This document shows positions 12-52,276 of a DNA stretch of 52,276 bases, one piece after another. The notes beneath the pieces were generated by a model, which saw only the letters and a list, made by a program, of their open reading frames with translations, had not been told where the DNA came from and searched no databases. A program made the translations under genes and the position numbers. Within the stretch, counting starts at the first letter, position 1. Each line of letters begins with the position of its first letter. Source of the stretch: Stylophora pistillata (lineage: Eukaryota); assembly GCF_002571385.2 (NCBI RefSeq), contig NW_019217897.1, forward strand, positions 291,987 through 344,262, written 5' to 3'.

Positions 12-2448
12 ATGTGGAAACAAAGATGCGAATTGCTATTCACCGGGCCTATGGCTAAAATTGACGAGGAAATCAAGTGTAAACATTTGTTGTACTGGTC
101 GGGAGAGCAAGGTATCGAACTGTTCAACAGCTGGGATCGGTCTGCAGACGAGCAAAAAAAGCTGGACAACTACTGGGAAAGATTTGAGCACTTCTTGAAA
201 CCACACTCGAATGAGTTAATAGTAGCGTGGGAGCTTTATAACCTTCGACAAGGTACTCTCTCTCTTGAGGAATTTATTGCGAAACTAAGAATTCTTGTGA
301 AGGAAGCCAATTATCCAGCCGAACACAACGATCGTTTCCTTAGAGATTTTCTTGTACTGGGTATGAAATCTGACCGTATACGTAAGGACTGTTTCAAGGT
401 TGGAAATACTCTCACGTTTAACACAGCTCGCGAGATGGCCAAGTCAGAAGGGTCAGCAGAAAAACAGCTTCAGATAATGAATACCGAGGTACACTCCATC
501 AATGCACCTAAAGGATACCAAGGCCTCAAAAATCAGCGACAAAACACTAGTTCAGGCAAATCCCAGGCTTGCAGGAATTCCGGCTGGGGTCCTCATTCCA
601 GAGATCAGTGCCCAGCGAAAAACGCAACATGCCATTATTGTCATAAAGTAGGACACCTAGTTAAGGTATGCCTGTCAAAGTTAAAAAAGAAAGATGTGCA
701 TGACTTTGAAGCTATAAGTAATGGTGCATGCGAGTCTGTACCAGACCCCAATGATCACATATTTCTGGGCCCAGTTGGTGTAACACCCTTAACCAGGTGC
801 CCGGCAGGAAAACAGACACCCGTCCTATGTAAGATAGACTCTGGTGCAGAAACCAACATCATATCCACATTCTTGTACAATCAACTTGCCCCTAAGGTTA
901 TGAATCTACAGAAACCTACCGCCAAGCTAACAGCATATGGTGGAACTGAAATCCCGAGCTTGGGCTCCTGCCGAGTTTACCGGTTAAGGGCCCTAACAAC
1001 CCATAACGCAAAGTAATCCAGGCAGAAGTTGTAGATGTCGATGGGCCTCCCATCATTGGTAACATATCAGCCCAAAGTCTGAATCTGCTGAAACTTAAAT
1101 GGGCCGTCGCCGTTGAAAGTAACAGCAAATCAACCAGTCAGTCCTTTAAACTATTAGACGCACATGGTAGGCCACATCCCTTCCCACTGACGAAAGAATA
1201 CCTTCTGAAAGAGTATCAAGATGTCTTTACTGGACTTGGCTGTTTCCCTGGCCCCCTATACCATTTAGAAACTAAGTCGGATATTCCCCCAGTACAACAC
1301 CCTCCACGGCAGATTCCAGTCCACCTGCAAAGTGCCTACCGAGGAGAACTACTACGGCTAACACGGGCAGGCATTTTAGTAGAAATACATGATGAGTATA
1401 CACCATGGGTCAATTCAACAGTGGTCATAAGAAAGCCCAACGGCCCGATCCGCTTATGCCTAGACCCTCGTGACCTCAATAAAGCCATTCAGCGCACCAT
1501 AAATGATGTGATACCCAAGGTCAGTGGCGCCTCCCACTTTAGTATCCTCGATGCCCGAAGCGGATTTTGGCAAGTTGAACTGGACGATGAAAGCAGCAAA
1601 CTTTGCACTTTCAGTACTCCATGGGGCAAATACAGATGGAAGAGGCTGCCTTTCAGACTTACCTGCAGCGGAGACGTGTTCCAAGAGAAAATGGACGATG
1701 TGTTTGGAAACCTCGATGGCCTGAGTGGTATAGCAGACGATACCTTTGTTTACGGCAAGAGCGAAGCAGAGCACGATCAGCACATACTGAATGTCCTTGA
1801 CACAGCACGGGAGAACAACATACGATTCAACCCGGATAAGTTTCGGTTTAAANCATAGTCAAGACAACGAGTGGGTCTGAGCTAAGACGCAACAGAGTCC
1901 AGCTAAAGCCTTTACCTTTCCAGAAAACACCAACAACCTGTGGAGAACAAGTTATTAGCAACCAGGAGAGTACACTGCCGGACAGCCATGAGACAAAGCC
2001 CTTACCTCTTCAGACGTCATCATCAGAATTACCTCAGGCGCCTGCCAAGTCACCGTTACCTTCCAACCAAGGCAGTAACAAGTTGCCTAGGACAACCAGG
2101 AGTGGCCGCATTGTAAAGGAGCCATCTAAACTAGACTTATAAGCTTCCTTTTGCTGTCCGAAGGCCGATGAAGAAACGCTCAGAGAAACACATAAACTCT
2201 GTTTTTACTGTTATTTTTGTTGTTTCTGTTTTCTTTTCTCTTTTTTTTTGTTGGCTGTTACTTGTTTTTAGAAACTTAGATTTCCGTTTTTAGCCTTTCT
2301 TAGGGTGGAGATGTTACATTAGCTAAGCTTACGCAATGGTCTGGCGCATGCGCAGAAAAGGACTAAGCACATGTTTTGGACACAAAGTTTATGTTCCTTG
2401 ATCTAAGATAACTAAATAAAATTACCAAAAGCAGCAAATACTTTTACA
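12..2448 (+). mobile_element. Ty3/Gypsy LTR retrotransposon (gag-protease-RT, pol C-terminus, PPT and 3' LTR); 5' part outside the window, middle collapsed at an N
   Basis: Gag with a CCHC knuckle (CHYCHKVGHLVKVC) and aspartic protease KIDSGAETN in ORF 12-1016. Frameshift near 980-1020. RT motifs LCLDPRDLN, LDARSGFWQ, RLPF and GIADD in 1421-1852. After the N at 1853 the typical pol tail RRNRVQLKP...TTRSGRIVKEPSKLDL* ends at 2142. RNase H and the integrase core are not seen. Confidence 0.93.
2312..2448 (+). repeat. 3' LTR (137 bp) of the Gypsy element
   Basis: Purine tract AGGGTGGAGA (2302-2311) directly precedes TGTTAC. The LTR ends TTTTACA at 2448 and contains AATAAA at 2415-2420. Similarity to the paralogous host segment (27256 onward) starts exactly at 2449. 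Confidence 0.8.
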
Positions 2449-14049: not shown

Positions 14050-17000
14050 GAAAGTTAGTTAGAAAGGAGCTTAGAGATCCCAGCCCGCCAAGATGCTTCA
14101 GATAAAATTAAGGGAGATGTGACGTATCGTGTAGCAGTTTTAAGGGACGTAAAATTTTAACAAAAGCATGCAAACTTTAAGATTTTATGCTTCTGAGTTC
14201 ATAGATTTTTTTCGACGGCTTAATCAGTTGATTAAATATGCATAAACGCGAACAGTCATCTCAACTTGCAACTCATAGCAGGCTCTCTGTTGCCGGTAAA
14301 ATAATTTAAAATATTGACAACCAAGATCACTGATATATTTCGGAACAGTCTGAATCGGAATATCTATTTAAAAAGCCACTCCTAGCAGGCAAGCTTTTCT
14401 CCTGTCATATTTTTTTTCATAAACTTTTCAATATGCATCGCATGAATAAAATTCTGAACTTTTTGATCGTGAAAATTATGTTCGGTTTAGCCTACCTTCA
14501 TTTCAGTCGACCTTTAATGAACGTGACGTGTTTCCAAAATAATAATTACAAAAGTGAATTCTTTCTCTTATTTTTGTTATAATTAAGAGGGGATCTTAAA
14601 GCTTTTGTCTTTTCTTCCCAGGGAAACAAGGCAACAAGTAAAATATTAATACATACAAAACTCTGATATGAATGTGTTAGCTCTACCAATTTTTAAAACC
14701 TATACTTATTCTTAAATTTTACCTGAGTAGGGAATCGAGATTGAAGCAGTGAACGGGAAGGATATTGTTGCATGTTACAAGCCTTATCAATTTCTCCTTC
14801 GCCTTCGTCTTTTTCCTTTTCCAGGAGTCTTTTCTTCTTCTGCAATTTCGTAAAATGTATATGAGTAGTTAAAGCTAAGAGACAACAGAATGAGATAAAT
14901 TGCACTTGGAAAACAAGCTGAACTTGTAGACTCAGTCTCATAACGACTAAAAAAGTTCACATATAGTACAATTGCATGTTCTCTGTTCAAAAGATTTCAT
15001 GTTGACAACATTTGATAAGAGAAACATTTAGGTCACTTCATTTCTCTCATGAAATTTCAACGTTATTCTAAAAATTAGAATAGAAAAAAAAACCTAGCCT
15101 ACCAATGGTTGTCCCTTGAAGACATCGTTGGCGGCATCATTATGAACAGACTGGAAAATTTTGACTGACTTGACCCTGTCTTGTTTGGGACCGTCATTTA
15201 GAATAGCTGGAAAGGGATCATTGCATTGCACGTCCATGACAGCGCCTCTGTTTTAAAAGTTTCGAAAACAAGTTTTGAAAGGGTTTTCCAGAATGTTTCC
15301 AGTCGTTCCCTATGACATTAAACAGTATGAAATATTCATTGCTCTTAGCACCGCGTTAGCCAATCATTTGGCAGGGCAAAATTTTAGATAGTTTCGAATT
15401 GCTTTGATGGTTCAATGGGAGTATCGTTTTAACAATCATATTGATAACATTTATGTGATGATTTCTTTGTGGTGGTTGATGAGATGATGCGACGATCATA
15501 GCAGAAGGTGAAAAATTCAAAGACAGGGATTTTTCTGGGGCCTACGACGTCCTCTTGTTGCCTCTTGTTTCTGATGCTAATCAATGCTCGACTTTATTGT
15601 GTCCAACTTTATAGACATATCTAAAGTTAGGGGTTCTTCATAGATGAAATGTGGAAATCTCTTAATGTGTCAGGAACAGATGGGGGTAAACACCTGTCAT
15701 TTTAAAGCGTCTTTCACCTTTGAAGATTAAAGTTTTAGGACAACTTAACCACTGTCGATCCCTCCAGCATGGAGATTGAGTACTTCAGAAATATTACCGA
15801 CCGAATGAAAATCTTGAAAAACTCGATAGAGAGGGATGTCAATGAACTGGTTGAAGCGGTTCTTAAACCGCTGGCTATTTTCTACGGCTTAAACGGTAAC
15901 AGAGATCCCCCATTGCCTCAGGAACTAGAGAGGAAAATAAGAGGATTTTTCACAGACGTCTACTGGACTTTGAGACTCCACTTGTTCTTGCACCTTGAAA
16001 ATCCTCTCGACATTAGCAGAATCCTTGAAGTGGGCGAATGGGGCGGCCTGAGTACCAATGACATGAGGGATATGGGTGACCAACACTTTAACCATTTTAC
16101 AGACCCTGGAAGCAACCTCTTGGAACTGGTGAGTGGATTGAGATTTCACATGCTTTGCTTTTACTAACTATCTCATCTCGCTAATCACTGCTGAGGGCCA
16201 TGGAAGGAGCTAGATTACAAACTGAAAAGAGATCAATTTGATTTCAGTAGAGCTTTTTTTTTGTCCTTGTCAGAACTATTTAAGTACTCTGAAACGGTAT
16301 CTAGCTTGGAAAGGGTACTGCTTTCTGGCTGGCGCGCGTTCGATCTTCCAAATTAACGGGGCATTTTAGTAAAAGAGCCTTCCAAAACCAATGAAGGAAT
16401 TTCAGACTAAGCATTTTAGATTTATTATGGCCCGTTTGGCGAGAGCGAGGTTTGTTCTGGCTCGGTCAAATCAAAAGGGTGAAGGAGCGACCATGTAATG
16501 TCTTGAGACCATTTAGTTTACATCCTGATGTTGAGTTTTTAATTCTACGAATTTTTGCATATTTTCTATATTTCAGCTCAGTTACCACCTGGAAAGTACC
16601 ACCCAAAGAGGGAGCAAAAAGCATGCCACAGATGTATTAGCATTAGCAAAATTATTCCTAGGCCATCTTCAAGCCGAAAACATCTTCCTACCAGACGTTT
16701 TGGTCATGGTTGAACACGTGCCTACGGAGAAGTTTTTCGTAGGTGCATCAATAGCAGTAAGTGACTTTGTAAGGCCTATCAGTTTGTACAATCGAATCAC
16801 TAATCTTAAAGGAAGCCTCGTAGCTGCAGTAATGCAGTTCCCTTATTCATGTCCTCCCTCTAAGCTAGATCTACGTAATTGGAGATTTTCATATGCCCGT
16901 AAAAGTCAAACCAGCGCGACAAGATATGATTCTTTGACTAGTGAGCTACCTTGCCAAAATTGTAGAACGTTGTTGACAAATGAGTTTTAGGGAAAGGGAG

Positions 17001-18110
17001 GGCCCACAGTTCTTGGTGCATGTGCAGAGTATTGTGCTGTAAATGAGCTTCTACCAGAGGAACAAATTTTTAGGCAGAGTCAGTATTTTCTCTCTAATGC
17101 ACAACTAGAGAGAAACTATAAGCGATGCGATACTCTTCTCAAAAGCTTTAGAGATATGTCGGAAATGTGCATAACTGCCTTGGAAACTGGAGACAGGGAT
17201 GAAATGGAGAGAGTGTACTGGAATGTGATAAACTTTATTCACATTTTTGGCCTAAGGCCAGAGTGTAATCGTTACTTCTGATTTTCTTTCGGTTTTCCTG
17301 GTTGTCAGGAATTAGCAGGGATGTAGGACCCGTCAAAAAAAATTCAACCTCTACTTTCCAGTAATTTGGGGAATCTATGGTAGACTAGAAGCCAAGTTAA
17401 CTAGGTAAATGCTAAAAACGAAAAAGAGCATTAAATTTCTCAAAACGTTCTCACCTAAGACAGTCGCTTTTTAGAATCGTTTAGAATTACTTTGGTTTAA
17501 CAATATCTCACAATCAAAGACATTCCTTAAAACTCAGGATTTAGCTTTGTCTTTCGTTTAAATGACAAGACTTTCTCGTTTGTAACTATAAAGATGTGAG
17601 TAGGATGAAATAGAAGCATACAGGCCCTCATGTTAGTCTCCTCTGGAACTGCATTCTGAGGCGTCATGCAGCACTTCCCCAAAAAGAAAGAGGGGATGTT
17701 GCGTGACATCTGAAAGCACGATGGTGGAGGGAACTACCTCTTGCAAGCAACGAAACACACGCAGAGAGGAGGGGGATGAACCAGTGAGCAGTATGACTCA
17801 CCCATCCTACTATGCTTAAGGGCTCCTTCTGACACAAGTCCAGTTAGAAACTCTTAAAGTTCGTGCATTTGCTTCTAAATTATAATAATAAGATGTACTT
17901 GTCAATTAAAAAATAAACTGAGTCAGAATAATCCATATATGCTATTACAATTGTTAATCAGCTTAGACTGAATCTCGTTATAATAATGTATTCAAATCAG
18001 TGGCAAATCAATAAAAACGCAATACAAAAGATTCTTACATAACTTGTTTGAGTAACATGGTATTCAATGAGATATTTAGGGTAAGGCCACACTTTCTTGA
18101 CCACAATAAC
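14050..18110 (+). repeat. Duplicated unit containing the deaminase-like gene; a further degenerate copy lies at ~20235-23590
   Basis: Colinear matches: 14075-15470 with 20235-21205, 16670-17390 with 21440-22105, and 17395-18110 with 22675-23590. Confidence 0.9.
15769..17281 (+). pseudogene. Two-exon gene (15769-16128, 16577-17281; ~354 codons) for an uncharacterised protein with PCxxC...CAE Zn-deaminase-like motifs; one in-frame TAG at 16988-16990
   Basis: ATG at 15769, donor CTG|GTGAGT at 16128/16129, polypyrimidine acceptor ttttctatatttcag| at 16576, phase-0 join in frame. Exon 2 reads LSYHLEST...FFVGASIAVS...ELPCQNCRTLLTNEF*GKGGPTVLGACAEYCAVNELL...PECNRYF* and stays open 96 codons past the TAG. 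Confidence 0.7.
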
Positions 18111-21440: not shown

Positions 21441-21990
21441 CCCAAAAACATCTTCCTAACAGAGGTTTTAGCGATGGTTGAATATTCGAGGAAATTTTTC
21501 GTAGGTGCATCAATAGCAGTACGTGACTACTAGGCCCATCTGTTTGTAAAATCGAATCACCAATCTTAAATTGAGCCTTGTAACTGCAGTAATAACTTTC
21601 TGTCCTGAATAATCCAAATCAACACGATTGGAAATTTTCATACGCCTGTAAAAGTTAAAATGACGCAAGATGTAGTTTCTTGACTAGTGAGCTTCCTTGT
21701 CAAAATTGTAGAACGTTGTTAATAGATCAAACGGGAAGGGAAGGGTGCTGTAAACGAGCTTCCATCAATTGAACAAGTTTATAAGGAGAGTGCGTGGCCC
21801 AAAAATCTAAAAATGGAGGAAAACCGTGTGCGATCCATCGCTCTTGTTTGGAAGCAATAGAAATTTGTCGAAAGTTTGCATATCTACCTTGGAAACCGGA
21901 GACATAAAAGAAATAGAGAGGACGTACTGGTAAATAATAAACGTTATGCACATCTTTGGCCTAAGGCCACAGTGTTATTGTCACTTTTGA
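21441..21990 (+). pseudogene. Degenerate second copy of the deaminase-like exon 2
   Basis: Matches 16675-17281 (FFVGASIAV, ELPCQNCRTLL) with stops and frameshifts. A ~30-bp deletion removes the GACAEY codons. Confidence 0.8.
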
Positions 21991-35940: not shown

Positions 35941-38900
35941 TTACTGGGCATCCTCTAGCTTAGCTTTACGCTCTTCTTCCTTCCTTTCTGCTTTTCTTTT
36001 TTCCCTAAAAACTTTTAAGTGCCTACGTTTGAATAAGTCACGCTTCCTTCTTTTTCTGTACTTGTGCTTTTTCATCTTCTTACGACGTATCTTGAGAATG
36101 CCCTTAAATCTCTTGCATTGTAAAGTTTTGGTATCTTGTGTGTCATCACCAACTGTAAGTTCATGTGTGTCATGATCCCCGATGATTGTTCTGATGATCC
36201 TTGAACAATGTGGAAAAATCAACTCTTGGATTGTTTCCTTAGGAATCTCAGGCAATATTACATCATATCCAGGGTTTCCACCAGGGAAAACTCTGCCATC
36301 ATTGGTTGTGTTAAGAATCAATAAATTTGGTCTCTGAAGCAATAACGGAACAGTAGAAAATAAAGGGAAACTTTTGGTGGAATGTGCCGCTTTGTTCAAT
36401 TGTGCTGCTGTTCCAGTTCCCAAATCTGCAAATGTAAAGCAAAACAAGAAATGACAATTATGTTACAAAACGAACATAATATTGTTTAATGTCGCCAAAG
36501 CTCTTGGAATGTTAGATTTGTGACAATTTCGAAGAAAGCCCACAATTTGGTGACCAGGTTTCAACTTAAGTTTAAGTCCTTGAAACTGAGACAATTATAG
36601 CAATAAATTGTTGTGTAAAGCTGGTGCCAAGTACTAGATAATTAGAGTCATTAAATGTAATTGTTATTCACTGGATGAGCTGAATGCTTTATGAACTTTT
36701 TAACTATTACTATACATTAGCCTTACTACAAAAAATCTGATTGGTCAACTGCATTCAATCAATATACAAGTGTGTGAAGTTGACATGAAATTCCCAGTAT
36801 CTGCAGTGGGTATTGCAGTTATCATGTTGAGTTTTAAGTCTGCCTAGTTTCCCAGCCATTCATCCAAGCAGTGTTCTCAAACTTTTCAAACTCAATGAAA
36901 AGAATCTTCTTTTGCAGATCGTTTACCAGATGTATAATAAAACAATTACTGTAATCAGTTTTTGTGTGATATCATAAATCATCAAACATCAAGTCTGAGT
37001 TATCTGCCTCAGCTTTCTGCTTTGCCAAATGACTCAGACTTCTGTTTTGATAATTCGTGAAATCATGGTCGACCTCATCCAATAATTGCTTAATATCACT
37101 GCCAATTGAGACCATACCAAATTGAATGGCAAAAACAGAAAAAAAAGCTCCAAACTCATGGTGATGCAAAAATCTAAAGTACACTATTCAATAAACATGA
37201 AAGGCATGAAAAGACAAAGGCAGAATCTGAACCAATCAAACAGCCAATCAAGATTCATCTGCTGATACGGAATGGCCATGGCTAACATAATTGAAAATGT
37301 GGCAATGAACTCAACTCAAATGTTGTTTTCACTCCACTCCAAACCTCTCTGTTAGCTCAGCTAAAAAAAATTCTTGTCTTAAATCTATTTTGTTTTACAC
37401 TATTTTTTGAATATTAAGAGTTTTGGTGAGACAGGAAAAGATAGGAAGGATCAGCAACGCCTTGAATTGGAAACATTAGTTATCATTTACATGCCGATGA
37501 CAAGTGTATGCAGAAAGCTACATATTAAGAGTAAGTCTACCTTCAAATCGGTTATGTAAGTTTACGGAGTAACTGCAGAATACCATGCCACTCATTTACA
37601 TTTTTACATTGTGCATCTCACAACAAGATCTCTTTTGAAAAACAATGAACAACTTTGAACTTTTATTTATTTCACACTGTTAATGGAAGTTAATATTTAT
37701 ATGAAAAATAGGAGAGAGAGAAGAATAAAAGTAATATTTGGTCATAAAGATAAGTTTGAGAGGTGCACGGTGTCCAAAGTAGCAAAAGCTTTCTAGTTGG
37801 ACATCATAATGGTCATATAAATAGATAGCAGCCTAAATAAAAGTAAATCAGCGGTAAAGTAAGTAAAATGATTAGGTTTAGTTGAACAAGGTTGAAGTTT
37901 CCATTTTTCCTTAAGAGTAGATCAGTAGCAAAGTAAAATGATCAGGTTTGGTTGAGCAAAAGTTGATGTTTCCATTCTTTTTTAAAGCTATTGTAAGGCA
38001 TATATTTAAGATAAGTGGGTACGATTTCCCATATCTTTGAAGCAGAGAATAATTATAAAAGATGATTTTTGGTGGATACTCTTAGTCTAAAAAAATTATT
38101 ATTAGAAGCAAATCTTGTATTATAATTATGTTTTTCAGATGCTGGGGTCAGGATATCAAGGAAGATATCTGGAATGCTATCACTTTTAATATTAATCTTA
38201 TATGTAAGGCAGCATATTCTGAATTTATAAATAGCATCCAACTTTAGAATTCCTAATAGTTTTTAATAGGGATTGGCACTTTCTCTAACATTTGCAAAGA
38301 AGATGCTGCCAGGACATTTCTTCTGCTTAATACAGAGGCATTTTAAGTTAGTATTGGTGGCACAGCCCCAGGTAGTTATACCATAGCTTAAATAGGGATA
38401 GATCAAAGCATAGTATAATTTTTTTAACATATTAAATTTGACATGTCTCAATATTGTAAGAATTCCAGTGTTTCTTGCTATTTCACTGTTTATATGTTAT
38501 ATTTGCGGTTGCCAATTTAGGTGCTTATCGATATAGACTCCCAGGTATTTTATATAATTCTTTGATTCAATGTTTTCAATATTTATCCTGGGGTGGTATC
38601 TAGGAGATGAAATTAACATAACTAGTTTTTGCAAAATTAATAGACAACTTATTTAGTGCACAGTATTTATAGATTTAAGCTCATGATTCATAACAGATTC
38701 TAGATTATGTGGGTTGTCACAAGTAAAAAACAAGTTGGTATCATCAGCAAAGCTCTGCACTGAAAGTTTATCAGTGCAATTGGTAAATCATTAACATAAA
38801 GTAGAAATAAAAGTGGACCTAGAGTTGAGCCTTGAAGTATACCACATGTTATAATTTCATTGGCATATCTAGTGGAATCTACTTTGACATATTGGTTACG

Positions 38901-41319: not shown

Positions 41320-42480
41320 ATCACCAGTATGGATTCAGACCACATCACTTTACTACTATGGCCATCTCTCGGCTTAGAACTTGTCAATAATATTTATGAA
41401 GGTTTTGAAAACAACCAGTACACTGTCCGTGGAGTCTTCATTGATCTTAGAAAGCATTTGATACAGTCAATCACGAAATACTTCTGGATAAACTAACTTT
41501 TTATGGCATTAGAGGTATCCCATTAACTTGGCTTACTAGCTATTTGTCCACAGACAGCAGTGCGTTGTGGTCCATGACGATACATCTTCATATAATCCGG
41601 TCGTTTGTGGGGTTCCCCAGGGTTCAGTTCTTGGACCTTTACTTTTTCTTTTATACGTTAATGATCTTTTTCATGTCTCCAACCTCTTGTCTATCATTCT
41701 CTTTGCTGATGGTACAAATATCTTTCTTCGTCATAATGACCTGGCTACCTTAGCAACCATTCTCAATGTAGAGCTCTCTTATGTTTCTTGTTGGTTTTAT
41801 GCTAACAAACTTACTGTTCATCCTGACAAGTCTAAATTCATCATTTTTCACCATCGACGTAAACAAATTAACTCCTCAGATATAAATATGTTTATGAATA
41901 ATTATTTCATCATGCGTGTGCAGGAAGACAAATCATTTCTCGGGATTATCATTCATGAAAATGTATCTTGAAAACCGCATATTTCTGCTGTATGTGATAA
42001 AGTCTCTAAAGAAATAGGAGTCTTGTGCAAGTCAAGGCGATACTTACCTTTTAACACTTTGAAAACTTTATATAATTCTCTTCTTCTACCCTACATAAAT
42101 TATGGCAGTTTAGTATGGGCATCTTCTTATGCTTCTTACCTTAAACTCCTTTATGTACTTCAAAGGAAAGCCGTTCGTATAATTACTTTTTCTCCTCAGC
42201 GCACATCCTCTAAACCCTTTTTTCTAAGCATAATATTCTTTCACTTTACTCTTAGTCTATAAATTCCATGTCGCCTGTTTTGTATTCTCACATTTTAATA
42301 ATCTTTTACCTGCTCCTGTTTCCTCGATGCTTCCTTTTAATTCTGAATATCACAATTATTTGACTCGTTCACGTTTTAATCTGTATAAAACCTGTCATAA
42401 ATATCAATTTGCTATCACTTGGCAAGCTCCTATTATTTGGAATGATATTCCGTTATCGGTGGGCAATAATCTCACAGGAA
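41320..42480 (+). mobile_element. Degenerate LINE RT fragment (L2/Crack-type), runs into a gap
   Basis: QYGFR, FDTVNHEILL, GVPQGSVLGPLLFLLYVNDL, LFADGT, LYNSLLLPYINYG; frameshifted. Confidence 0.88.
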
Positions 42481-44500: not shown

Positions 44501-45325
44501 TCACACCCCAATGGCTTTAACGTCCGTTTCTTCAACGCAGCCGCACTCAATTATTTGTCTAAAATGCAATGGAAGAGAAATACCGACAGCAAAACACATG
44601 ACGTAGAGGTAAATAACCCTCTCGACAAACCTTATACATCGGAGCATTTCTTCAGAATTTTGGAAACGGTATATGACAGAGCAGGTTACATCCAAAGCTA
44701 TAATTGTTATTATACCTATGGAAATCAAAATCGTATAACACACAGACATCTTATTTTTTCTTAAAAAGCCTAGGAAAGTATTCGTGTCTGCCAGTTCCTC
44801 CGAGTCGTCCTCAGTAAAGGTGCAAATTCTCCACGACACCACAAAGACAAGGCCCATGATCAGCAAGCAGGCCACAGTTATGGCAAGATGAGATGAACAC
44901 AAATCTGCGGCGGAGAAAATAACCAAGAATAATCCAATACCACCACTGATGACTACAAGAAAAATCAATGCTGCTTTGGGAGATATTGCCTTCGTGAGGC
45001 CGATTATAGTGTGATGCTCGATTGCCAGCATTGCCAAAATGTTGTAAATCATAAGGAATCCAACAGAAGTCATCAGAATGCTGTTTGTTCCGCACCACTC
45101 CTCCTCCTGTTTGTTTTTGAAAGCTATTGTGGCCTCGTTGGCATTCAAACTGAGAAGGATGAGCTGTAAAATACTCTGGCAAATCATCAGTGGCCTGCTT
45201 TTCTGAAGAATCGTGTATTTCGTTTTGTCCTTGAAGCAGCTGGTTAATAGTCGTGCGTTGTGGAAGAGACCAAACAGATGAAACATTATGAGCAACCAGT
45301 AGCACAGCTCCATGATATCCACCAT
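44501..45325 (-). CDS. Intronless 274-aa seven-transmembrane protein, divergent class A GPCR-like
   Basis: Seven hydrophobic segments; TM1 GLFHN, Cys at the top of TM3, NILAMLAIEHH at the DRY position, TM7 ISLPLHF. Two paralogs lie nearby. Confidence 0.8.
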   Translation of the reverse strand: MVDIMELCYWLLIMFHLFGLFHNARLLTSCFKDKTKYTILQKSRPLMICQSILQLILLSLNANEATIAFKNKQEEEWCGTNSILMTSVGFLMIYNILAMLAIEHHTIIGLTKAISPKAALIFLVVISGGIGLFLVIFSAADLCSSHLAITVACLLIMGLVFVVSWRICTFTEDDSEELADTNTFLGFLRKNKMSVCYTILISIGIITIIALDVTCSVIYRFQNSEEMLRCIRFVERVIYLYVMCFAVGISLPLHFRQIIECGCVEETDVKAIGV

Positions 45326-49990: not shown

Positions 49991-50882
49991 ATGAGATGCA
50001 ATGAATATATGAAGTTCATATATTTTGAACTGCGGTATTAGATACGTATGATGTGCGATCCTCGCAGTAGATAGCGTTATTTATGCAATAGCGAAAATCA
50101 GACCTGAAAAAAATCAGGCCTGTACGGGACTCGAACCACTGACCTCTGCGATACTAGTGCAGCGCTCTACCAATTGAGCTAACAAGCCAACTGGGAGCAG
50201 GCCGTTAAGTTGATTCGTAATAAACCCGTGAAAGTGATAAATGAGATGCAATGAATATATGAAGTTCATATATTTTGAACTGCGGTATTAGATACGTATG
50301 ATGTGCGATCCTCGCAGTAGATAGCGCTATTTATGCAATAGCGAAAATCAGACCTGAAAAAAATCAGGCCTGTACGGGACTCGAACCACTGACCTCTGCG
50401 ATACTAGTGCAGCGCTCTACCAATTGAGCTAACAAGCCAACTGGGAGCAGGCCGTTAAGTTGATTCGTAATAAACCCGTGAAAGTGATAAATGAGATGCA
50501 ATGAATATATGAAGTTCATATATTTTGAACTGCGGTATTAGATACGTATGATGTGCGATCCTCGCAGTAGATAGCGCTATTTATGCAATAGCGAAAATCA
50601 GACCTGAAAAAAATCAGGCCTGTACGGGACTCGAACCACTGACCTCTGCGATACTAGTGCAGCGCTCTACCAATTGAGCTAACAAGCCAACTGGGAGCAG
50701 GCCGTTAAGTTGATTCGTAATAAACCCGTGAAAGTGATAAATGAGATGCAATGAATATATGAAGTTCATATATTTTGAACTGCGGTATTAGATACGTATG
50801 ATGTGCGATCCTCGCAGTAGATAGCGCTATTTATGCAATAGCGAAGATCAGACCTGAAAAAAATCAGACCTGTACGGGACTC
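49991..50882 (-). repeat. Tandem array of a 250-bp tRNA-like/SINE unit (at least 3.5 copies, continues into a gap)
   Basis: Unit starts at 49991, 50241, 50491 and 50741; copies are nearly identical. Each full unit has a tRNA-like segment (e.g. 50188-50116) followed by a T7 run. Confidence 0.95.
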
Positions 50883-50991
50883 NNNNNNNNNNNNNNNNNN
50901 NNNNNNNNNNNNNNNNNNNNNNNNNNNNNNNNNNNNNNNNNNNNNNNNNNNNNNNNNNNNNNNNNNNNNNNNNNNNNNNNNNNNNNNNNNN

Positions 50992-51805
50992 TTGAGCAAG
51001 TGATTTGAACAGGGAGTTCGTTTGGATTGGTGCTGAGGCTCATATTATCTTCAAAAAGAATCAATTGTGCGAAAGTTGCAGATAAAAGAATTTCCACTGC
51101 CAATAAACCTACGGTGTTATAAATGAATGCCAGAAGCCATGTAAGGGTTTCTTCGTTATACAACTCCCTTCCTTGAATCCATAGAATACAAATGTAATAT
51201 ATGGAAACCAAACTAGAAAAAAGTGTGATCGCCTTCCATATGTTTTTCACAGTTGACTCTTCACGTTTGAAATCGAGTTTCGGCTGCATTTCTTTTAGAT
51301 CATCCATCGCTTTATCGACATCGCATAAAAACAGTATCCACGCTAAAATCAATACGCAAACAGTCAACAGTGTACAAGCAATGAATTTAAACCAGTAAAA
51401 TATTGCACAGGTAACAACTCCAGCAATCAACGCTGCTGCAATCGCTTCAACGGAAGATAGCGCCCGTTTAAGGCCAAGTATGGGATGGTCCGTTACTGCT
51501 ATTACCCCCAACATGTTGTAAAACAAGAAAGGCCATAACAGATGAATTAGCTCACCACCGGTTCTGTTCCACTTATTTTCTTGATCATCAAAGTAGCTGA
51601 ACATTTGCCCTGTTCTGTTGGTGTTCCAAACAAGGACAATCAGTTGTAGAACGCACTGAAAGATCATGATTGGTCTGCATTTCTTTAGAAAAATGTTCCT
51701 CCGTTTGTCTTTGAAGCAGCTCAGTAACAATCTTAAGTTAGAAAAAATTAAAATGAGATGAATAGCGTCTGTAACCAAATATAAGCACTTGATGAATAGA
51801 ATCAT
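50992..51805 (-). CDS. Third 7TM family paralog, intronless; C-terminus lost in the gap
   Basis: Likely start caaccATG at 51805. Shares N.RLL.SCFKDK, L.K.RP.MI.Q..LQLI, YN.L and I.GL..A.S with 44501-45325. Open for at least 270 codons up to the Ns. Confidence 0.78.
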
Positions 51806-52276
51806 GGTTGATATGCAGATTGCTAATCGTAAAGCGACTATCAGATTTGTATTGATAAGGTTATCTCTTCCCTCCTTGAACAAAGTGGATTGGGACAAGC
51901 TTGTAGAAGTGAGTAGCGAGAGAACTTAACATTAAACAAAAGTTTGAACGGGCTACTCAAATTACCGACTGGCAGACAATATAGATAAGAATCAAAAGAA
52001 TATTCTGGAATTTTAATTTGGTGACCACTTGGTTTTGATTGACAGTCATGCGAACAAATCATTCTTTACCAGAATACTCTTAAAGATGCTCCTAATACTT
52101 TCATTTTAGGGAAGGAATAAAAAGAGGGAGTTCTATAACCAATAAGTGAGGTAAATAGCAAATTTTTCTGATGAAAGCGCTGGTCTGCTTGCCAAAATTA
52201 ATAAAACATGAAGTTCAAGGAATAGGAAAATTTATGGAGATCCAAGTCAAGGTCGACAAGAGCGACGCCATGCTCC

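Follow-up and report, generated by a model that had tools for sequence, protein, structure and literature searches.

The window analysed here, 52,276 nt of the 398-Mb Stylophora pistillata assembly (contig NW_019217897.1, here C114; G000:C114:291987-344262), contains a two-exon gene that belongs to a multi-copy gene family. That the gene and its family are genuine is, in our judgement, virtually certain. The family has not been described until now, has no Pfam domain and has named members only in stony corals. Its members share three cysteines and a glutamate in two short motifs, PCxxC and CAE, and we tentatively propose that they are zinc-dependent deaminase-like enzymes in which PCxxC occupies its usual place and the CxE motif has moved behind it. 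Coordinates given without a contig or locus label are positions in the window.

The first-pass annotation had proposed a hidden gene at this locus, with a GT-AG intron (16129-16576) joining two reading frames, and this was borne out by the sequence, by paralogs, by a RefSeq gene model and by RNA coverage. From a start codon at 15769, exon 1 extends for 360 nt (120 codons) and carries at its 3' end a DPGS..LE motif that is conserved in the family. The donor (16128/16129) reads CTG/GTGAGT and the acceptor (16576/16577), which is rich in pyrimidines, reads TATATTTCAG/CTC. The frame is kept across the intron, and exon 2 runs to a TGA at 17279-17281. The product comprises 354 sense or X codons and includes one in-frame stop upstream of the TGA, the TAG at 16988-16990. 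Contigs from two polyA RNA runs covered 15795-16068 and 16576-17600 and beyond, with none in 16139-16564, and one contig from run X7 has its start precisely at the acceptor, apart from five letters that could not be placed. A random-primed RNA run covered the intron and the upstream spacer as well, and therefore probably holds DNA or pre-mRNA. The exon 1 contigs end near 16070, adjoining a variant site at 16071 that was seen in run X2, and contig breaking at this site may be the cause. As no contig bridging 16128 and 16577 was found among the RNA contigs of the locus, the joint itself is inferred, but it is well supported. Of the RNA check that had been suggested for the junction, the covered exons, the skipped intron and the homologous splicing of a transcript-derived paralog protein (see below) came out as anticipated, and no contig bridged 16128 to 16577. 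A chance open reading frame (ORF) or a false intron is ruled out by the paralogs, the RefSeq model and the RNA coverage.

The in-frame TAG in exon 2, which had also been noted in the first pass, is polymorphic. At 16989 the reference has A, as does X15, a DNA-like run with a depth of 75, and 3/3 RNA runs, which come from three studies, have C, giving TCG (Ser). One of the TCG-carrying runs, a polyA run under the same organism label, is otherwise at least 99% identical to the window, and Ser is the family consensus in this column. The C in every one of these RNA runs makes the TAG an allele and not a fixed break: the reference allele is null, and other colonies transcribe an open 354-codon allele. 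The simple reading is one of allelic variation, across DNA-like and RNA runs from different colonies. We know of no editing process that changes A to C, and this, together with the C in the three RNA runs, speaks against a fixed pseudogene break, recoding or RNA editing as explanations of the TAG. Seven of the ten non-stop coding differences seen in other colonies alter a residue.

At least 16 places in the S. pistillata genome resemble exon 2, and the last third of exon 2 was found at 14 places. Homologs of exon 1 are present in contigs C379, C591 and C1641 in addition to the window's own copy, and at each of these four loci the exon 1 homolog lies 1-2 kb upstream of an exon 2 homolog on the same strand. 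The copy in C379, which is on the minus strand (exon 1 L002:2436-2801, exon 2 L002:1201-1893), is intact. It has the same intron position, with a GTGAGT donor and a TTTCAG acceptor, and its product is identical to RefSeq LOC111338716, a 353-aa protein modelled with two exons. A third paralog group includes a run-assembly protein with the sequence ...DPGSKVLEM/FRVVAAS..., whereas ORFs from unspliced DNA read ...VTFQ/FRVVAAS..., and the difference places a splice at the homologous point.

A HMMER scan of 1.84 billion representatives returned 81 matches and a profile search returned 153, indicating approximately 150 family members. All of the named members are scleractinian, from Stylophora, Montipora foliosa, M. 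capricornis, Acropora digitifera and A. millepora. As Pocilloporidae and Acroporidae belong to the two deep branches of stony corals and both are represented, the family is old within Scleractinia. None of the family members listed has a precomputed Pfam domain, and a search of the literature for the locus names returned no mention. Chordate relatives, suggested by the taxon label 'Chordata' in the ESM Atlas, were not confirmed; the named sequence matches are all corals, and a 388-aa Atlas representative that carries this label has the length of a Montipora protein. Matches to giant adhesins of the Bacteroidota type IX secretion system (P0063, P0071, P0074 and similar), with E values down to 1e-13, are spurious. 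These adhesins contain up to 14 copies of a near-identical 79-aa tandem repeat, each scoring 27.7 bits, and their low E values arise because the repeat scores are summed, a trap for homology calls based on phmmer.

Residue numbers used below are those of the 353-aa C379 paralog, and conservation was counted in 149 aligned members. As the first pass had described, the motifs are in reversed order, PCxxC before CAE, and in every member scanned CAE follows CxxC by 17-36 residues. At the locus, LPCQNC and GACAEY are indeed close together in this order, with a distance from the second Cys of CQNC to the Cys of CAE of 19 residues, TAG counted, rather than the approximately 16 originally given. The expectation that C-x-x-C and C-A-E would be conserved among coral homologs held for each of C245 (149/149), C248 (148/149), C268 (149/149) and E270 (148/149). 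Flanking positions in the second motif are also near-invariant (A269 146/149; Y271 145/149), while G266 is present in 108/149 members and replaced by A in 35, and in the first motif P244 is found in 105/149 and N247 in 127/149. Elsewhere, P189 and L192 are invariant (149/149 each) and R188 (144/149), R195 (145/149) and W221 (145/149) are nearly so. In strand 2 and at the start of helix 2, the position of Gx[CH]xE in deaminases, the family has G-[AS]-S-x-A-V-S, which is conserved as strongly as the Cys motifs (G178 147/147; S180 144/147; V183 147/149). The site, in its longer form G-[AS]-S-x-A-V-S-x-F-L-R-P, contains no Cys, His or Glu.

The Cys that follows C-A-E-Y, C272, is kept in only 132/149 members (89%), and V, S, P, T, R and G, which are unable to bind zinc, are among its substitutes. 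The site is therefore three Cys plus Glu, and a Cys4 zinc finger or zinc ribbon is ruled out. No His conserved at 93% or more was found anywhere in the C-terminal domain in the 149-member alignment, which argues against a thiol protease; a Cys-His-Asp/Asn triad of the papain or transglutaminase type is accordingly absent. Cys3 cytidine deaminases have a zinc centre made up in this way, with the three Cys and the Glu in C-A-E and P-C-x-x-C contexts (PMC3239186). We consider it likely that a zinc site is present.

A model of the full-length paralog built with 21 sequences was poor (predicted local distance difference test, pLDDT, 64), and one of its exon 2 domain built with 49 sequences was confident (pLDDT 89.3; predicted template modelling score 0.84). 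In the latter, both motifs are at helix N-termini, as the zinc ligands of deaminases are. The order of elements, helix 1, strand 1, strand 2, helix 2, strand 3, PCxxC helix, is the normal deaminase order, with the PCxxC helix (124-131) following strand 3 (99-106) as in the cytidine deaminase (CDA) superfamily. Two further hallmarks of that superfamily were not found: there is no [H/C/D]xE at the start of helix 2, between strands 2 and 3, and no CxE or HxE ahead of PCxxC in any member scanned. The circular permutation put forward in the first-pass annotation is not supported, as the element order up to PCxxC is canonical and only CxE is displaced, to the next helix. An artificially reordered alignment scored no better than the canonical one (P 0.04 versus 0.048). 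A register between FVGASIAVS and FLGACAEYC was found by hhalign, but over only 10 columns and without significance (P 0.084), and an internal duplication of the strand 2/helix 2 element was not adopted.

Pfam profiles, Atlas look-ups and hhalign agree, weakly and each below threshold, on YwqJ-type deaminases. When 49 family members were scanned with Pfam, PF14431 (YwqJ-deaminase) was matched by 2/49 (E 0.023 and 0.096) and PF14424 by 1/49 (E 0.074), all sub-threshold. The PF14431 match in P0043 covers ARKRDGTYKPPCTNCRNTFKHL, which corresponds to the PCxxC helix (profile positions 115-136 of 138), and scored 13.3 bits against a cut-off of 25.9 bits. A six-frame search of the coral genome with PF14431 returned no match at E <= 1. 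In the ESM Atlas, YwqJ or dCMP-deaminase clusters account for 4/8 of the non-family structural neighbours (template modelling (TM) scores 0.28-0.43, residues 131-255), and the best named feature match is YwqJ (0.75). When the coral core was aligned by hhalign with YwqJ-related toxins gathered from bacterial genomes, 94 columns matched in canonical order, with PCxNC on ACHNC and SIAVS on the YwqJ AGIAG stretch just before HAE. The CAE segment alone aligned in the GLHAE register (P 0.29). The PCxxC motif aligns with that of both YwqJ and TadA-like profiles, and the P values obtained against deaminase profiles (0.048 and 0.17) are to be read beside a control, YwqJ against 30 TadA-like domains, that reached only P 0.014, indicating low power. 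By eye, the coral G-A-C-A-E-Y-C-P-V-N-x-L-L resembles the YwqJ-type G-L-H-A-E-V-Q-A-L-N-x-x-L, and P-C-x-N-C resembles A-C-H-N-C. The YwqJ signature is Gx[CH]xE, and this clade often lacks the elements after helix 3 (PMC3239186).

Several observations weigh against a deaminase. The motif order contradicts that of every described deaminase clade, including the cnidarian AID/APOBEC-like clades described so far, which keep the usual order (PMC5889660), and the model has three clear strands where the deaminase template, a three-layer alpha/beta/alpha fold with sheet order 2-1-3-4-5, has five. The search against deaminase folds that had been recommended gave no significant match: Foldseek against the PDB returned nothing at E <= 0.001, and the deaminases it did return, of the cytidine and blasticidin-S types (7zob, 1wn6, 2z3j), had E values of 0.85 or above (about 1), with a root-mean-square deviation near 11. 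Two VIA lists were filled by the C-terminal hairpin, with no deaminase in the top 50, and PDB searches by sequence or profile gave only chance helical matches. No piece of the gene and no family member reaches any Pfam threshold, and there was no significant profile match to a deaminase family. Atlas TM scores below 0.5 and a feature score of 0.75 are at the level of a lead only, the hhalign match to YwqJ-related toxins is weak at P 0.048, and moving the CAE segment to the canonical place did not improve the hhalign score. The dN/dS near 1 at the locus copy (see below) is also compatible with plain decay of a null allele. Separate queries with exon 1, exon 2 before the TAG and exon 2 after the TAG gave no match in Pfam or in the PDB by sequence (the full-length query was the paralog protein LOC111338716), and viral structures in BFVD gave none.

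On the deaminase-like reading, the protein would consist of an N-terminal helical domain, an alpha/beta core and a C-terminal helical hairpin. One zinc would be held by C245 and C248, in the P-C-x-N-C that opens the helix following strand 3, and by C268, in the C-A-E of the following helix, and E270 would activate a zinc-bound water as in Cys3-type cytidine deaminases. The core might descend from a YwqJ-type deaminase, or at least work like one, with Gx[CH]xE gone from its normal place and G-A-C-A-E one helix downstream; this would place the active site against the opposite side of the PCxxC helix. Deaminases of the standard template pack helices 2, 3 and 4 next to one another against the same face of the sheet, helix 3 being the middle one, so a site between helices 3 and 4 appears geometrically plausible. 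The G-x-S-x-A-V-S at the old helix 2 site may line the pocket, or may be a decayed Gx[CH]xE, for which the internal-repeat test was not significant. The substrate would probably be a base in a nucleotide or nucleic acid, which the near-invariant R188, R195, N157 and S180 could hold. An origin from deaminases is a possibility that we take seriously without being confident of it, and activity on nucleic acids seems to us rather doubtful.

The family shows birth-and-death evolution, and its sequences change fast except in a small fixed core. Relative to the C379 paralog, the exons of the gene are 76% and 79% identical and the intron 83%, while the 300 nt upstream of the ATG (15469-15768, aligned with L002:2802-3101 on the minus strand) are 87% identical, above either exon. 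The promoter region was duplicated along with the gene, and divergence since then has been faster in the coding parts than in the flanking DNA. The ratio of non-synonymous to synonymous substitution rates (dN/dS) for this pair is 1.00 in exon 1 and 0.82 in exon 2. Another young intact pair gave 0.80, and older pairs 0.24-0.56 with saturated dS. Contig C114 contains five family copies within approximately 100 kb, several with stops, that form a loose birth-and-death cluster. One of these, 4.3 kb downstream of the gene, is a decayed partial exon 2 in which ELPCQNCRTLL and the C-terminal helices survive. It is interrupted by stops and a change of frame, and no match to the part containing GACAEY was obtained; just downstream of it the start of the parent's 3' untranslated region (UTR) is recognisable. 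Such fast divergence would be as in conflict or immunity genes, and a role of this kind is suggested only by the expansion in copy number, the dN/dS near 1 and the nonsense polymorphism. At its fullest, the proposal would be that these are expanded, fast-diversifying coral nucleic-acid deaminases derived from a YwqJ-type bacterial toxin domain, with CxE moved from helix 2 to behind PCxxC, acting as mutators or editors against viruses, transposons or symbiont-derived nucleic acids and with null alleles segregating as for APOBEC3; in this form we regard it as improbable.

The same centre could instead be structural, the three Cys tying two helices together in a non-enzyme, perhaps an adaptor that binds nucleic acid or protein, with the Glu and two Arg serving folding or binding. 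This we consider unlikely. It would account for the lack of a significant match to any enzyme family, for the weak Fer4 or zinc-ribbon-type matches that Cys spacing produces in several members and for the variable length of the loop between CxxC and CAE (17-36 residues), and, with Cys at position 272 in 89% of members, a Cys4 site would be available to many of them. However, some members have V, S or P in place of C272, deaminases make up most of the structural neighbours from outside the family, and C-A-E, conserved as a block from A269 to Y271 at the counts given above, is the exact catalytic signature of Cys3 deaminases. Convergence on a Cys3-plus-Glu centre by a zinc hydrolase of unrelated fold, whose substrate may not be a nucleobase, is in our view similarly unlikely. 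A high-confidence model without a significant PDB match, three predicted strands, a motif order unlike that of any deaminase and a transglutaminase-like cluster among the Atlas neighbours (TM 0.39) all fit it, but the likeness of both motifs to YwqJ extends beyond the ligands (P-x-C-x-N-C; G-x-C-A-E....N..L), the order of elements up to PCxxC is that of deaminases, three separate weak signals agree on YwqJ and no conserved His is available for a Cys protease.

Even if the family is functional, the copy in the window could be a dying pseudogene, an explanation to which we give little credence. Decay would be consistent with the TAG between the motifs in the reference and run X15, with a dN/dS of 0.8-1.0 against the nearest paralog, with the proportion of residue-changing differences in other colonies and with the decayed copies nearby on the same contig. 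It is countered by the open TCG allele in RNA runs from three studies, one of them the polyA run that nearly matches the window, and by the locus copy itself, in which all of the residues that are near-invariant in the family are intact and there are no frameshifts. The deaminase-like reading remains the one that we prefer for the family. The positions of the gene, its motifs and related features are collected in Table 1.

Table 1. Features of the gene and of related copies on contig C114
Feature	Position	Strand	Remarks
Exon 1	15769-16128	+	120 codons; N-terminal helical domain; polyA RNA contigs 15795-16068; no Pfam match
Intron	16129-16576	+	Phase-0 GT..AG, 448 nt; from sequence; no polyA RNA contig in 16139-16564
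Exon 2	16577-17281	+	234 codons plus TGA; alpha/beta core with both motifs, then C-terminal helical hairpin; paralog model pLDDT 89.3
FFVGASIAVS	16733-16762	+	Strand 2 and loop before helix 2, where deaminases carry Gx[CH]xE
LPCQNC	16946-16963	+	P-C-Q-N-C at 16949-16963; two predicted zinc ligands at start of helix after strand 3
Premature TAG	16988-16990	+	Codon 258, between the two motifs; polymorphic at 16989
GACAEYC	17015-17035	+	GACAEY 17015-17032; predicted third zinc ligand and putative catalytic Glu at start of next helix
3' UTR	17282-17600	+	At least to 17600; X7 and X9 RNA contigs, the X9 contig extending past 17600
Decayed partial exon 2 copy	21620-21987	+	G000:C114:313606-313713 and 313815-313973, each with TAA
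Further C114 copies outside the window	210968-211663; 275571-276214; 284703-285269 (contig positions)	-; +; +	One intact, two with stops
Model elements before the motifs (exon 2 numbering)	helix 14-29; strands 41-47, 52-57; helices 66-86; strand 99-106		
Model elements from PCxxC onward (exon 2 numbering)	helix 124-131; confident loop; helix 148-155; helical hairpin 171-218		Helices start from C123-x-x-C126 and C146-A-E148

The neighbours of the gene show no functional link to it. Retrotransposon fragments are present at 12-1016, 1421-1858 and 41567-41971 on the plus strand, with a weak gag match (E 0.0095) and two reverse-transcriptase ORFs (RVT_1, E 3e-19 and 1e-10). A 168-aa ORF at 35944-36447 on the minus strand matches COX24_C (E 5e-7) and, weakly, NPR1_like_C, and may be an exon of an unrelated gene. 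Two long intronless ORFs on the minus strand (44504-45325 and 50867-51898) had no Pfam match at E <= 0.01, and the other ORFs of the window also had no Pfam match. Separately, record L050 (titled Vagococcus sp. WN89Y) carries a cdd that is 77% identical to E. coli cdd, and its genome was grouped in the phylum of E. coli; the record appears to be mislabelled or contaminated.

If the deaminase-like reading is right, this would be the first deaminase-like family with the catalytic CxE behind PCxxC, and would imply that, even in so ancient a fold, an adjacent helix can be used to rebuild the zinc centre. The family would then offer a new scaffold among the enzymes mined for base editing. Little is known of innate immunity in corals, and the family would provide them with candidate mutators or editors that bear the evolutionary marks of conflict genes. 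On the weaker readings, too, it is an undescribed family of approximately 150 members with no Pfam domain and a predicted metal site, and the natural polymorphism between null and functional alleles could be used in association studies.

Among known systems, the metazoan AID/APOBEC-like deaminases, which include cnidarian clades (PMC5889660), show lineage expansions, clustered paralogs, rapid change and null alleles, as the coral family does. However, AID/APOBEC-like proteins have HxE followed by PCxxC and match APOBEC-type profiles, whereas the coral family matches none of these, and its weak affinities are with the YwqJ side, with a C-terminal hairpin, and not with the helix-4 side of AID/APOBEC. 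The tetrameric cytidine and blasticidin-S deaminases have the same set of ligands, C-A-E plus P-C-x-x-C with the Glu, and their motifs are also at helix N-termini. They are, though, five-stranded proteins of approximately 130 aa, in contrast to a coral core with three clear strands, extra domains and the reversed motif order. The YwqJ-like deaminases (PF14431), which serve as toxin domains in bacterial polymorphic toxins and include some fungal members, are the only named family matched by Pfam, by Atlas features, by Atlas structure (TM about 0.4) and by hhalign. Both families carry P-x-C-x-N-C at the start of the helix that follows strand 3 and a helix with G-x-[CH]-A-E....N..L, both have an insert that separates strand 3 from CxxC, and in both the elements after helix 3 are reduced. 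In YwqJ, GxHAE precedes PCxxC, whereas the coral GACAE lies 17-36 residues after it, and the canonical site is occupied by G-x-S-x-A-V-S. The coral proteins also differ from YwqJ in having an extra N-terminal helical domain, a C-terminal helical hairpin and an intron, with no partners for toxin delivery or immunity.

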